From the NCBI GenBank assembly GCA_040285825.1, contig JAUPSS010000005.1, forward strand, positions 558,001 to 622,000: a stretch of DNA of 64,000 nucleotides. The letters are read 5' to 3'. The notes under the pieces are model-generated. The model saw only the letters and a program-made list of their open reading frames with translations. It was not told where the DNA came from and searched no databases. The translations under genes were made by a program, and so were the position numbers. Positions 5,153-37,690 of this stretch are shown here, in pieces (within the stretch, counting starts at the first letter, position 1; each line of letters opens with the position of its first letter). The stretch is from Eukaryota sp. TZLM1-RC. Its lineage: Eukaryota > Protista > Metamonada: BaSk clade.

Positions 5153-5270
5153 GCCGATCATCTCCGGTTAAGTTTAGACATGTGGATGTGGTTGAAGTAT
5201 TGGATGATGACATTTTAGATAAAGAATGCAATTCCAGGGAAAACCACAAGCAGTAGCATTGTATTTCCTT

Positions 5271-6266
5271 ATGTACAAACTGGTTGCTCTTTTTGCCGTT
5301 GTCGCTTTCGCCTTAGCTAACGATGAACATATCGTAGCTATGGTTAACTCTAACCCTACTGCTCGCTGGGTAGCTGGTTTCAATCCCAGATTCGCAGGAA
5401 TGACCGCTGAAGAACGCCGCTCGCTTTTGGGTACTCGCATTGAGTTCCTCAATCTTCCCAAGAAGGTCGAAGTTTCTAACGATCTCCCCGAATCTTTTGA
5501 TGTCCGTCAACAATGGCCAGGTTGTCCCTCTTACGCCATCCGTGATCAAGGTCGCTGTGGTTCTTGTTGGGCTTTCGGTGCCGCTGAAGCTTTATCTGAC
5601 AGATTCTGCGCCGCCAAGGGAATGAAGGTTATTCTTTCCCCCCAATGGCTCGTCTCCTGTGACAAGTCCAACATGGCCTGTAACGGTGGATGGTTAGATA
5701 AGGTCTGGAACTTCATGGCTTCTACTGGTGTTGTTGAAGATTCATGTATGCCCTACGTCTCTGGTCAGTCTGGTCAAGTCCCCGCATGTCCTTCCTCTTG
5801 TAAGGATGGATCCGCCCTCCAAATGTACAAAGCTGCCAATGCATATGATGTCTCCTCAAATGAACAAAGCATTATGACAGAAATCCAAAAGCATGGTTCC
5901 GTAGAAGTTGGATTCTCTGTATACTCTGATTTCATGTCTTATCGCTCAGGTATCTACCACCATGTTTCCGGTTATCTCCAAGGAGGCCATGCCGTCAAAA
6001 TGATCGGCTGGGGTGTTGAAAATGGCGAGAAGTATTGGTTGGTTGCTAACTCTTGGGGTACTTCCTGGGGAGAACAAGGTCACTTCCGTATCCGTCGTGG
6101 TGTTAACGAGTGTAACATTGAATCTATGGTCACTGCTGGTGAAGTTGGTGAATCTCCTGCTGAAGCTGAATCTAACTTGGGTGCTGAACGTCGTTGTTCC
6201 ACTTCTTGTTCCTTTAACTCTCGTGGTGAATGGGAATGTAGAGTTGAATGTAGATGGGTTTGGTAG
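5271..6266 (+). CDS. Cathepsin B-like cysteine protease (papain family C1A), secreted/lysosomal
   Basis: Signal peptide MYKLVALFAVVAFALA and cathepsin B-type propeptide. Catalytic motifs QGRCGSCWAF, GGHAVK and ANSWG. No His-His occluding loop. Strong codon bias. Confidence 0.95.
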   Translation: MYKLVALFAVVAFALANDEHIVAMVNSNPTARWVAGFNPRFAGMTAEERRSLLGTRIEFLNLPKKVEVSNDLPESFDVRQQWPGCPSYAIRDQGRCGSCWAFGAAEALSDRFCAAKGMKVILSPQWLVSCDKSNMACNGGWLDKVWNFMASTGVVEDSCMPYVSGQSGQVPACPSSCKDGSALQMYKAANAYDVSSNEQSIMTEIQKHGSVEVGFSVYSDFMSYRSGIYHHVSGYLQGGHAVKMIGWGVENGEKYWLVANSWGTSWGEQGHFRIRRGVNECNIESMVTAGEVGESPAEAESNLGAERRCSTSCSFNSRGEWECRVECRWVW

Positions 6267-17076: not shown

Positions 17077-18398
17077 CTACTCCAACCTAGGCATTTTTCT
17101 AACAGTGGCAACCCCAATTGGACTCTCTAAATCAAAACCATCATCATCAAGACTCTGGTCCAAATCAAACTTCCTTTGCTTAAGGTAAGCTCTGTCCTCG
17201 GAAGATATCCTAGGTGGGACTAACCTTGCTTGACCTATCCTTTCGGAATTGAGTGGAGTTTTTGTATCCGTACGAGGAGTGTCAAGGTTGAGAAAGCCTA
17301 AACGTTTAGTGACAGTACTTGGAGGTCCAGAAAGAGGAGTTTCGGATTTAGCTGGAATCAGATCATTATTAAAATAAACAAACCAAATGGTAATTGGTTG
17401 ATAGGAGTTATGGGTACTCCACTAGTGAAGTATGGGTGATTCAGTGCTGCCTCCACACTAATTCTTTTTCGTGGATCTAAGACAAGCATTTTTCTAATCA
17501 AATCAATGGCATCGTCCCCATAAACTGAAGGAATGACCCTCTCCCATGGTGTAGTGGGCATAGATTTATGTGTGATGTAGGAAGGAAGAGAGGTGACTCC
17601 AGGCCATGATTGTTCTGTTGGTGTACCCAGAATTGAAAAGATTTTGTTGAGTTGGTCAATATCAGAATTACCTGGGAATAATGGCCTCCTGAGCATCATT
17701 TCAGCAAAAATACATCCTATGATTAAGAAAAAAATTTAAATAAATACCTAAAGTTAATTCAAATATAAACCACGTACCTATCGCCCAAACATCTATACCA
17801 CTGCTGTACCACCTAGCCCCAAACAGTATTTCAGGGGCCCTGTACCATATCGTGGCAATAGTTCCTGACAAAACTTTATTGGGAGAACCAAAAGTTCTGG
17901 CGGCACCAAAATCAGTTAGTTTTAAAAGACCATTGCTAGACATTAGGAGGTTACTTGGTTTTAAATCTCTTTGGTTATTGTGTATGGGGAAAAATACCTG
18001 TGAAATATGTATTTGGAATGTAAGAAAGCAACTCCTGTGGTGAAAAGAGGTAGATATATACCTTCAAGTAACATTTTAAGGTATGTTTTAATATGCGATG
18101 GAGTAAGAAGGACTTTGCGCGAGGTAATGATCTTGTCCAAGTCAGTCTCTAGAAACTCAAAAACCAAATACACACTATCTGCATGGGAGAAGACGTCTAG
18201 AAGGGAAACAATACGTGGGTGTTGAAGTTCTGAGAGAAACTTAATTTCACGAAGCGCAGTCAGAGGTATACCTTCACGAAGAGCGGTGGATCGCATCTTT
18301 TTGAGTGCACAAAGTTGTCCAGTGGCTTTGTGGACACACTGATAGACAACACCATCAGTTCCTTGTCCTACTTCCTTAACGAACTCATAGTTGTCCAT
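17077..18398 (-). CDS. CDK7: CDK7/CDKD-like cyclin-dependent kinase; exons 18398-18062, 18034-17998, 17968-17778, 17716-17384, 17351-17077
   Basis: [46 protein letters not shown] and [11 protein letters not shown] after splicing. The last exon is open for 91 codons to TAG at 17077. Confidence 0.85.
17352..17383 (-). other. 32-nt intron (CDK7 last intron)
   Basis: GTTTGTTTATTTTAATAATGATCTGATTCCAG; removal opens a 91-codon final exon. Confidence 0.8.
17717..17777 (-). other. 61-nt intervening sequence = two abutting introns (30 nt 17777-17748; 31 nt 17747-17717)
   Basis: GTACGTGGTTTATATTTGAATTAACTTTAG|GTATTTATTTAAATTTTTTTCTTAATCATAG; removal restores VWAIG|CIFAEM. Confidence 0.88.
17969..17997 (-). 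other. 29-nt intron (CDK7 intron 2)
   Basis: GTATTTTTCCCCATACACAATAACCAAAG; removal restores HRDLKP. Confidence 0.92.
18035..18061 (-). other. 27-nt in-frame intron (CDK7 intron 1)
   Basis: GTATATATCTACCTCTTTTCACCACAG; removal gives canonical LLEGVAFLH. Confidence 0.82.
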
Positions 18399-31638: not shown

Positions 31639-32595
31639 CTAAACCTTCTCCTTCACAGTTACATCATTGAAATCAAATACAATGAACCAATACTTAACCC
31701 AGAAGAACAAAGCCAAGGAAATGAACACATGGAAGACAGCATGTAGTTGGAAAATGAAGAACCCACCAAAGAGACAAACGAACCAATCCAAAAACCATGC
31801 CAACACGCCAAAGAAGAAGTAAACTAATGGTAGCACAAGTTTTGGTAGGAGCTTTAAGGTCAATTTGCAGTAGACAAATATGAACAGTTCAATGACGATC
31901 AAAACCAAAAAGGCAAGAGAAAGGAAGAACCAGATAACTCTACACCATCTGGGAACAAGCAAGCCAATAAAGACAATAATGATTGCTCCATATATAAAAA
32001 ACCTTGTAAAAGCTACCCAAAAGTCAATATCTTTCTTCAATGCTCTCCACAGTCTGAGTATGGCAAAAAGGACCAACCAGAACACTAGCAAGAGGTTAGT
32101 AACTGCCTCCATTCGTTCACCGAGGAGTGTTAAGGAAGCATGATATAACCAGCCTGAGAACCCAACGAGAACGGTGATGAATGCTAGGATTAATATATGA
32201 AGACTGGATTTGTCCCCTTGAATCAGGACAGGGTAGTAGAACAACATGTAGATCGCAACAGCAACAAAGGACAAGCTGGACCAACTGTTGATGAACTGTC
32301 GAACAGGAGATTGATGATTATCCCCTTCACAAAAACAATAACGACCAAATGTTTTCTGTGTAAGACAACATGCGTCCATGGATAAATCGGGCCAACATAT
32401 GTTGGAGATTGCATAAATGAAGAAACAAATGGTCAAAAGGATGGCAATTGTCCAGAGAATTATTTTACGCCAGTAAGCGTACCTAATGTAAGAAGGAAAG
32501 AAATGAACAAACAGTTCTGAGCCACCATTTGACTGAAGAAGTTTGTTAACAGTGCAGCTGTTGGAGCGATCAAATGATTCGTAGTCAACGTTCAT
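31639..32595 (-). CDS. Alkaline ceramidase-like multi-TM protein (CREST superfamily)
   Basis: FCE..INSWSSL, SGWLYHASL (S..H) and LHAVFH (HxxxH) motifs with multiple TM helices. Confidence 0.8.
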   Translation of the reverse strand: MNVDYESFDRSNSCTVNKLLQSNGGSELFVHFFPSYIRYAYWRKIILWTIAILLTICFFIYAISNICWPDLSMDACCLTQKTFGRYCFCEGDNHQSPVRQFINSWSSLSFVAVAIYMLFYYPVLIQGDKSSLHILILAFITVLVGFSGWLYHASLTLLGERMEAVTNLLLVFWLVLFAILRLWRALKKDIDFWVAFTRFFIYGAIIIVFIGLLVPRWCRVIWFFLSLAFLVLIVIELFIFVYCKLTLKLLPKLVLPLVYFFFGVLAWFLDWFVCLFGGFFIFQLHAVFHVFISLALFFWVKYWFIVFDFNDVTVKEKV

Positions 32596-36208: not shown

Positions 36209-37186
36209 TCAATAGTCATCAATAACAAAATTTGGGACATTGTTTTTCGATTGATACGTTATGCCTTCATCAATTCGCAGTTGTGACGCTGGTACTCTAC
36301 CAGTGACTACATTTCGAGAAAATTGATCAGCTGTAGGGCTAGATTTTGAGTCAACTTCTGATGAATTTGCACGTTGGCTCCCCTGAGTGACTGCTATTTT
36401 GACTTCCTTCCCCAGTCCCTGTCCCTCATTTGATGATTCTAAGTTACCCTGAAATAGTGGCTGGGTTGAAGGCTCTGACACAATTGGCTTCATTGCTGTA
36501 GGCAATACTGATAACGAAGAAGGATCTGACTTGAAAGCTGAAACTTTGTTCTTTTTAAATTGCTTGATCACAAACCATAATACAAATGTGAACACGATAA
36601 CTGAAATAATTACAAGGATACTTTCCACTGTGTAATTCTGTGTAGGGTCATCACTGGGGTCATCAATGGGATCATCAGTAGGATGAACTGGACAAGTTCC
36701 ATTAAGCAAACCTTCAAAATTATGAAGAACGTATAAATCCAATTCAGTTAATGTGTGATTGAAATTGAAAAAGTCTTCACATTGAATAGCAACATCTTAG
36801 AAATCAGAAAACCTGTCGCCAAAAGAAATTAAATTGAAAACTTGACCTTCAAATAGCGCTTCATGAGTGTAGTTGACTTTTAAAAAACCACCCACTTCCA
36901 GGGCTTCTTCTACGTATAATTGACCATAATTACCTTCTTCATTAGTAAAAACTAATTGAGATTCATTTGATAAGATCAAGTTGTGTCTAATATGAAGTAA
37001 AAAAGTGGGATTCAAAGTACCATCATTGACTAATGTTGCATTAACAAAACCAAAACCAGTAATGATGCTATCGTTTGAATTAAAAACCAGAGAAGAGCTC
37101 CTAATTTCACCATTTGAAAGCACCAATGATGCAGGGTATTCTAAATATAGCTCACCAAATGAATTAATAAAACCTGCATTTTGAAC
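36209..37186 (-). pseudogene. 5'-truncated duplicate of the RCC1-repeat membrane protein gene
   Basis: Matches 56873-57847. Has a CAA>TAA nonsense change at 36797 and no 5' half. Confidence 0.9.
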
Positions 37187-37690
37187 TCTGATGACAGAGG
37201 TGATGTATACTGTGATTGGATTGAGAACTCTGGAGCTGTTGTTGATTTTGTCTCATGTAATGTTGCAAATGACACTTTGGTTCAAAGAAGAAAACTTAAT
37301 CCTGTGAGTGCTCTTGAATTTAAAGCTAAAGAAAAACATAGAAAATATGATAAAGATATCGAAGAAGCTAATGCTGATAGAAATAAACCACTTGTTTTTA
37401 TTGCTTTCCCATTTTCGATAAACGGAAGACTATCAGTAGAAGCAGGAACTTTTTTGAATGATTCCCAAAAAAAATGGTCCAAAAAAAGAATGAAAAAATT
37501 TTATATCTTTTTATAAAGCTCTCGGATTCAATTTACCATTGTTAATAGATTCCCTTGGTTTTTCAATCGAATTAGAGAAGCTTTAGCTAGACATCAAGCA
37601 GATCAAGATTTTGTAGATTAAATCTTGGTTCAATGATAGTCGTCACATTAGTTATGATTTGATTTTGTCAAGTGTGTGAGTTAAACAAAA
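37179..37690 (+). mobile_element. 5'-truncated RLE retrotransposon (family A), decayed
   Basis: SDDRGDVYCDW..KAKEKHRKY; 3' UTR similar to 10875-10925. Confidence 0.88.

Follow-up and report, generated by a model that had tools for sequence, protein, structure and literature searches.

Is the 61-nt segment that interrupts the CDK7-like kinase gene of Skoliomonas litria taken out of the transcript as a single intron, or does it consist of two minimal introns that abut with nothing between them and are spliced one after the other? Zero-length exons are known for breaking up very long animal introns, and the segment presents the same anatomy at close to the minimum size of an intron. S. litria is a soda-lake flagellate belonging to the metamonads; its type strain is TZLM1-RC, with a genome of 31.9 Mb on 16 contigs and a G+C content of 35.8%. 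The gene lies within a 64,000-nt stretch of this genome, the whole of which is referred to here as the window.

Structure of the CDK7 gene

Introns were inferred from the annotated range of each gene and the length of its product: we looked for combinations of GT...AG segments whose removal leaves an open reading frame of the stated length. The annotated range of the CDK7 gene spans 1322 nt and its coding sequence 1173 nt, leaving 149 nt of introns, and this is the sum of introns of 27, 29, and 32 nt and the 61-nt segment (Table 1). The exon translations, which run from MDNYEF to MLLE (18398–18062), from DLKPSN to GIDVWAI (17967–17779), and from CIFAEMM to LPFG (17714–17380) followed by the tail, correspond residue for residue to the annotated protein of strain TZLM1-RC (P0151, 390 aa). 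The closest named relatives of this protein are CDK7 and CDK-D kinases, with identities of 42–52%, and Pfam PF00069 is given for the product. This similarity, together with a DxWxxGC helix-F motif that is intact once the transcript is spliced, identifies the product as a CDK-activating kinase.

Table 1. Features of the CDK7-like kinase gene of S. litria (positions in the window)
Feature	Position	Strand	Basis
CDK7-like kinase gene, ATG to TAG, 390-aa product	17077..18398	-	annotated protein P0151 equals exon translations; annotated range
Intron 1, 27 nt, multiple of three, stop-free	18035..18061	-	intron-set solution
Intron 2, 29 nt	17969..17997	-	intron-set solution
Exon 3, ends ...GIDVWAI plus first base of Gly189 codon	17778..17968	-	translation
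Unit 1, 30-nt mini-intron, GTACGT...TTAACTTTAG	17748..17777	-	intron-set solution, signal scores
Candidate zero-length exon, unit 1 acceptor AG abuts unit 2 donor GT	17747..17748	-	signal fit
Unit 2, 31-nt mini-intron, GTATTT...TTAATCATAG	17717..17747	-	intron-set solution, signal scores
Exon 4, starts with last two bases of Gly189 codon, then CIFAEMM...	17384..17716	-	translation
Last intron, 32 nt	17352..17383	-	intron-set solution

The 61-nt segment splits the Gly189 codon (G|GA) in a highly conserved part of the kinase. Residues D184, W186, G189, and C190 are identical in all 25 aligned CDK7 sequences, and none of the 24 homologues has a gap at G189|C190. All 61 nt are removed in the RNA-seq-guided gene model of the annotators. 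A sequence-only reading of this DNA had proposed that the 61 nt at 17717–17777 must be removed to restore the motif DVWAIG|CIFAEM, and this is borne out by the annotated protein, which is identical to the one predicted, and by the 24 homologues without an insertion. The annotated protein and the gap-free alignment together indicate that mature CDK7 mRNA contains neither part of the segment.

Intron signals of S. litria

The rules that S. litria introns obey were determined from 18 introns other than the CDK7 segment. Sixteen of these, all single introns, belong to genes that either encode conserved domains or have one possible solution; the other two were picked up by a scan of open reading frames at the left end of the window, which is unannotated. 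The sequence covered, approximately 158 kb, consisted of the window with its flank and of four loci elsewhere, on contigs 6, 8, 9, and 12. Introns that break the T-9/A-7 rule described below and that belong to transposon-derived or hypothetical gene models were left out of the reference set; they are probably annotation noise.

The 18 introns are 26–37 nt in length, with a median of 30 nt. All have T at -9, A at -7, and T at +4, and 17 of the 18 have T at +6. The A at -7 sits in a yTnAy motif, and the arrangement T-N-A with A at -7 is found in 20 of 20 units when the two CDK7 units are counted with the 18 introns. This A marks a branch site that is fused to the acceptor, a habit known from Trichomonas and Giardia. 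The introns of these metamonads lack a polypyrimidine tract, and a short, constant distance separates the branch motif from the terminal AG (PMC2483917). S. litria is similar in both respects, but Trichomonas and Giardia have few introns and a longer conserved motif, in which the A is one base more distant from the AG than in S. litria.

The usual distance from donor to branch site in S. litria introns is 19–30 nt. It had been suggested from the sequence that the spliceosome works with a ruler of about 30 nt. This is too strict a formulation, in that what stays invariant is the spacing between the branch A and the 3' end, whereas the total length varies from 26 to 37 nt. The CDK7 segment is the sole rule-conforming intron longer than 37 nt in the approximately 158 kb. 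An annotated intron of 77 nt in a gene at another locus (L009, 14857–15884) has T-9 and A-7 and contains no internal junction; it may be a real long intron, in which case the spliceosome may tolerate long distances between donor and branch site, and a strict 30-nt ruler is therefore doubtful.

Two complete sets of signals in the 61-nt segment

The segment (17777–17717, minus strand) divides at 17748|17747, within AG|GT, into parts of 30 and 31 nt, the coordinates, strand, and point of division all agreeing with the earlier proposal. Unit 1 has its donor GTACGT at 17777–17772, T-9 at 17756, the branch A at 17754, and the AG at 17749–17748. Unit 2 has its donor GTATTT at 17747–17742, T-9 at 17725, the branch A at 17723, and the AG at 17718–17717. 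Both units therefore have the properties of a standard S. litria mini-intron (26–37 nt, GT...AG, T+6, T-9, A-7), and the sole departure of unit 1 from the intron rules is a C at +4, where the 18 other introns all have T. The proposal that each half obeys the rules of the surrounding introns was accordingly correct as to length, T-9, A-7, and T+6 in both halves.

The internal junction, TTAACTTTAG|GTATTT at 17757–17742, places a functional-looking acceptor directly against a functional-looking donor inside the 61 nt that are removed, which is the arrangement of a zero-length exon. The segment does not subdivide an unusually long intron in the ordinary sense, as its 61 nt are long only by comparison with the 26–37-nt introns found here; this length is almost exactly twice the median. 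The outermost donor and the outermost branch site and acceptor also make up a formally valid 61-nt intron, and this is the second-ranked solution for the intron set. Unit 1 has a length that is a multiple of three and contains no in-frame stop.

We scored the signals with position weight matrices trained on the 12 introns that had been resolved at that stage. The donor scores were 6.5 for unit 1 and 4.9 for unit 2, as compared to 4.9–10.1 for the training introns, and the branch/acceptor scores were 8.0 and 6.5, as compared to 5.7–12.8. All four scores, among them the two at the internal junction, thus fall within the training range. No donor in the set scores lower than that of unit 2, which ties with the weakest training intron. 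The inner acceptor, that of unit 1, outscores the outer acceptor of unit 2, and its spacing from the first donor is the usual one.

A potential concern is that such a junction might arise by chance. To calculate this, the outer signals were held fixed and the 45-nt interior was randomized, a match being counted when the result could be divided into two parts of 24–37 nt with T-9, A-7, AG|GT, and T+6. Under these strict rules an internal junction arose in 0.06% of trials when the interior was drawn with intron composition and in 0.26% when it was shuffled; with matrix thresholds the proportion was 0.007–0.03%. Judged from the sequence, a coincidental origin of the internal AG|GT junction would be very unlikely. 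The full double-unit pattern was also sought on both strands of 71.5 kb and gave one match, the CDK7 site, with block shuffles giving a mean of 0.35 matches; taken alone, the pattern is therefore weak evidence. The CDK7 case is strong because the pattern falls exactly where removal of an intron is required. No second double-unit site was found in the window plus flank, in two other S. litria loci (L008 and L009), or in the locus of the related strain GEM-RC discussed below.

We also considered whether the segment might be shortened by a hairpin. The 61-mer has a predicted folding energy of -4.5 kcal/mol (z = -0.13), indicating no unusual RNA structure, and the idea of such a hairpin was rejected.

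Probable stepwise removal of the segment

Based on the sequence, we favor, with a probability of roughly 0.6, a reading in which the 61 nt are two self-sufficient introns with a zero-length exon between them, removed in two reactions. Each unit has a full set of signals: a GTNNNT donor, a T-N-A branch motif whose A lies at -7, and a terminal AG. With the acceptor set by the branch site, each unit would be recognized over its own length and so undergo its own reaction. A spliceosome assembled at the donor at 17777 would pair this with the branch site at 17754 and cut at 17748. If unit 1 is removed first, exon 3 would be joined to the GT at 17747, which would restore a donor, much as ratchet points do in Drosophila, and unit 2 would then be removed. 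If unit 2 is removed first, unit 1 would stay intact ahead of exon 4. Both orders appear possible and would give the same final mRNA; simultaneous assembly on both units is unlikely due to steric overlap. The inner branch site and acceptor are nearer to the first donor and have the higher score, so they should be used from that donor, and a second step would then be forced. Both the actual use of the internal sites and the order of removal are what we infer from the positions and scores of the signals. Several points speak against this reading: the low score of the unit 2 donor, the C at +4 of unit 1, the validity of the outer pair of signals, the annotated 77-nt intron, and the failure to find a second double-unit site in the approximately 158 kb covered.

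The principal alternative is that the segment is a single 61-nt intron, spliced in one step from the donor at 17777 with the branch site at 17723, the internal AG|GT being a relic or a coincidence that is ignored. We consider this possible, with odds of perhaps one in four. It agrees with the outer signals, which are valid by themselves, with the presence of an annotated 77-nt intron in S. litria, and with the weakness of the unit 2 donor. But an internal junction occurs by chance in no more than 0.3% of such introns, the longest of the 18 resolved introns has 37 nt, and the spliceosome would have to ignore an inner acceptor that is both nearer and higher-scoring, for which an unknown mechanism is needed.

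The effects of incomplete splicing differ between the two units. Retention of unit 2, or of both units, results in a frameshift with a stop 15 codons later. When unit 1 alone is retained, translation gives an in-frame, stop-free insert of 10 amino acids, as had been predicted for splicing of the 31-nt half alone. It had further been suggested that this could be a regulatory isoform, with unit 1 sometimes retained by regulated alternative splicing to yield a functional CDK7 with 10 extra residues. Such a transcript would escape nonsense surveillance, as the 30 nt of unit 1 are open in frame, but the product is difficult to reconcile with the structure of the kinase. In the AlphaFold model of the protein, G189|C190 lies in the middle of a helix (181–197, pLDDT >90) that is helix F of the kinase fold, carrying the DxWxxG motif of subdomain IX. 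A 10-residue insert would separate the invariant G189 and C190 within this helix, at a site where no gap occurs in any of the 24 homologues; judging from the model, a functional isoform is therefore unlikely. Unit 1 also has an A+T content of 73%, as compared to 58% for the exons, and carries a full set of intron signals.

It is highly improbable that unit 1 is constitutively retained as coding sequence, or that the locus reflects an error of annotation or assembly: unit 1 is in frame and stop-free and some neighboring gene models are poor, but the RNA-seq-guided annotation removes all 61 nt, the motif is invariant and gap-free in the homologues, and the two halves differ in sequence, which argues against an assembly duplication.

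Comparison with other systems

Zero-nucleotide-exon ratchet points are found in Drosophila and human introns with lengths of tens to hundreds of kilobases, where their use proceeds strictly from 5' to 3'. The CDK7 segment resembles them in that an acceptor abuts a donor within the removed segment, splicing at this point would re-create a donor, and the mRNA keeps nothing of the site. It differs in that it is 61 nt long, a scale approximately 1000 times smaller, both of its parts are of standard intron size, either order of removal would be possible, and its internal junction is a candidate site. In the stwintrons of filamentous fungi, the order of removal is obligatory, as a splice signal of the outer intron is disrupted by an inner one. 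Stwintrons likewise involve two introns at one site and two splicing reactions, but the CDK7 segment is not a stwintron: its units abut rather than being nested, donor, branch site, and acceptor are complete in each, and the outer pair of signals is intact too.

In Schizosaccharomyces pombe, spliceosome profiling has revealed two cases of zero-length exons, which are used in vivo; both were proven by spliceosome-bound RNA, and the one described in detail is in a 336-nt intron in the non-coding host of a snoRNA (bioRxiv 10.1101/226894). As in S. litria, this is a unicellular eukaryote with short introns, and the internal acceptor lies right beside a donor. The S. litria site, a candidate, differs in being located in a coding gene and in consisting of two units of minimum size. 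In the literature that we searched, neither the introns of S. litria nor mini-introns that abut one another in a protist are described. We know of no description of abutting introns in Trichomonas or Giardia.

A broader reading, which we regard as tentative and more doubtful than the stepwise removal of the CDK7 segment, is that the spliceosome of S. litria accepts only a short distance from donor to branch site, such that introns longer than about 37 nt would persist mainly as chains of ~30-nt units with zero-length exons, removed unit by unit, and that such chains would originate from gain of mini-introns preferentially at a boundary AG|GT. If stepwise removal is true and further cases hold, a spliceosome tuned to ~30 nt would handle extra length by chaining units. 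The segment would then offer a natural setting in which to test strict intron definition, and it could point to the ways and places in which new mini-introns insert. If stepwise removal is not borne out, the segment would be a curiosity of one gene.

Origin of the two units

The CDK7 orthologue of Skoliomonas sp. GEM-RC (P0001, 62% identity) is a single uninterrupted open reading frame with none of the CDK7 introns, and some ten genes next to it are likewise intronless. An orthologue from TZLM3-RCL was not found when the lineage-specific C-terminal tail was used as the query. No intron is present at the G|C site in the CDK7 genes of amphioxus and the green alga Elliptochloris, in which the nearest introns are 5 and 10 codons downstream, and we therefore reject an ancestral intron position at this site. 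The intronless GEM-RC orthologue and the lack of an intron at this site in amphioxus and Elliptochloris indicate that the units are either lineage-specific gains or were lost from GEM-RC. At three alignable sites homologous to S. litria introns, the GEM-RC gene reads AG|G.

Three other origins were considered and rejected. Tandem duplication of an intron was rejected, as the likeness between unit 1 and unit 2 is no higher than that between random pairs of introns (rank 39 of 91). An origin by duplication of flanking exon was rejected because neither unit resembles the neighboring 45 nt of exon (p = 0.35–0.78). A lost micro-exon was likewise dismissed, with no residue missing at the junction in the 25 aligned CDK7 proteins. 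An idea that fits the sequence is that the AG|GT at the boundary of an existing intron may draw the insertion of a second one.

The intron density of the two Skoliomonas genomes may be strongly different. In a GEM-RC locus of approximately 21 kb (L001), all nine complete annotated genes have a range equal to their coding length and are thus intronless; for similar S. litria loci, the annotation places introns, many of which are doubtful, in about one third of the gene models. A separate observation concerns intron 2 of the S. litria CDK7 gene (17969–17997, minus strand), which is located at FHR|DLKP in phase 2 (AG|A), one base from an amphioxus intron at LHR|DLKP in phase 0 (L006, 3477/3924). 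Possible explanations are a shift of an ancient intron position and an independent gain at a proto-splice site.

Observations on other gene models

The T-9/A-7 rule could serve to filter annotation errors. In transposon-rich loci (L009 7376–7735, 11698–12729, and 14857–15884; several genes of L010; L008 11252–12836), the predicted introns range from 25 to 77 nt, with totals of up to about 860 nt, and most of those in such gene models are without T-9/A-7. An annotated gene for a 309-aa hypothetical protein (36209–37256 of the window, minus strand; L004 16122–17169) implies 118 nt of introns, and none of the rule-conforming intron combinations tried for it solves the annotated model. One frame of this gene is open over nearly the whole range, with a single stop at gene position 458, and the gene model is probably wrong. 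The cathepsin-B open reading frame at 5226–6266 has no exact product on record, which makes an upstream exon probable.

Rule-conforming introns at 288–321 (34 nt) and 1668–1697 (30 nt) of the window, both on the minus strand, join long open frames. The ceramidase gene (31639–32595, minus strand) is an uninterrupted open reading frame of 318 codons, but its annotated product has 308 aa and a single 30-nt intron is assigned to it. This intron, GTTTGT...CTTACATTAG, is a multiple of three in length and has no in-frame stop, and callers of open reading frames are blind to introns of this type. Intron 1 of the CDK7 gene (27 nt, 18035–18061) is of the same kind.
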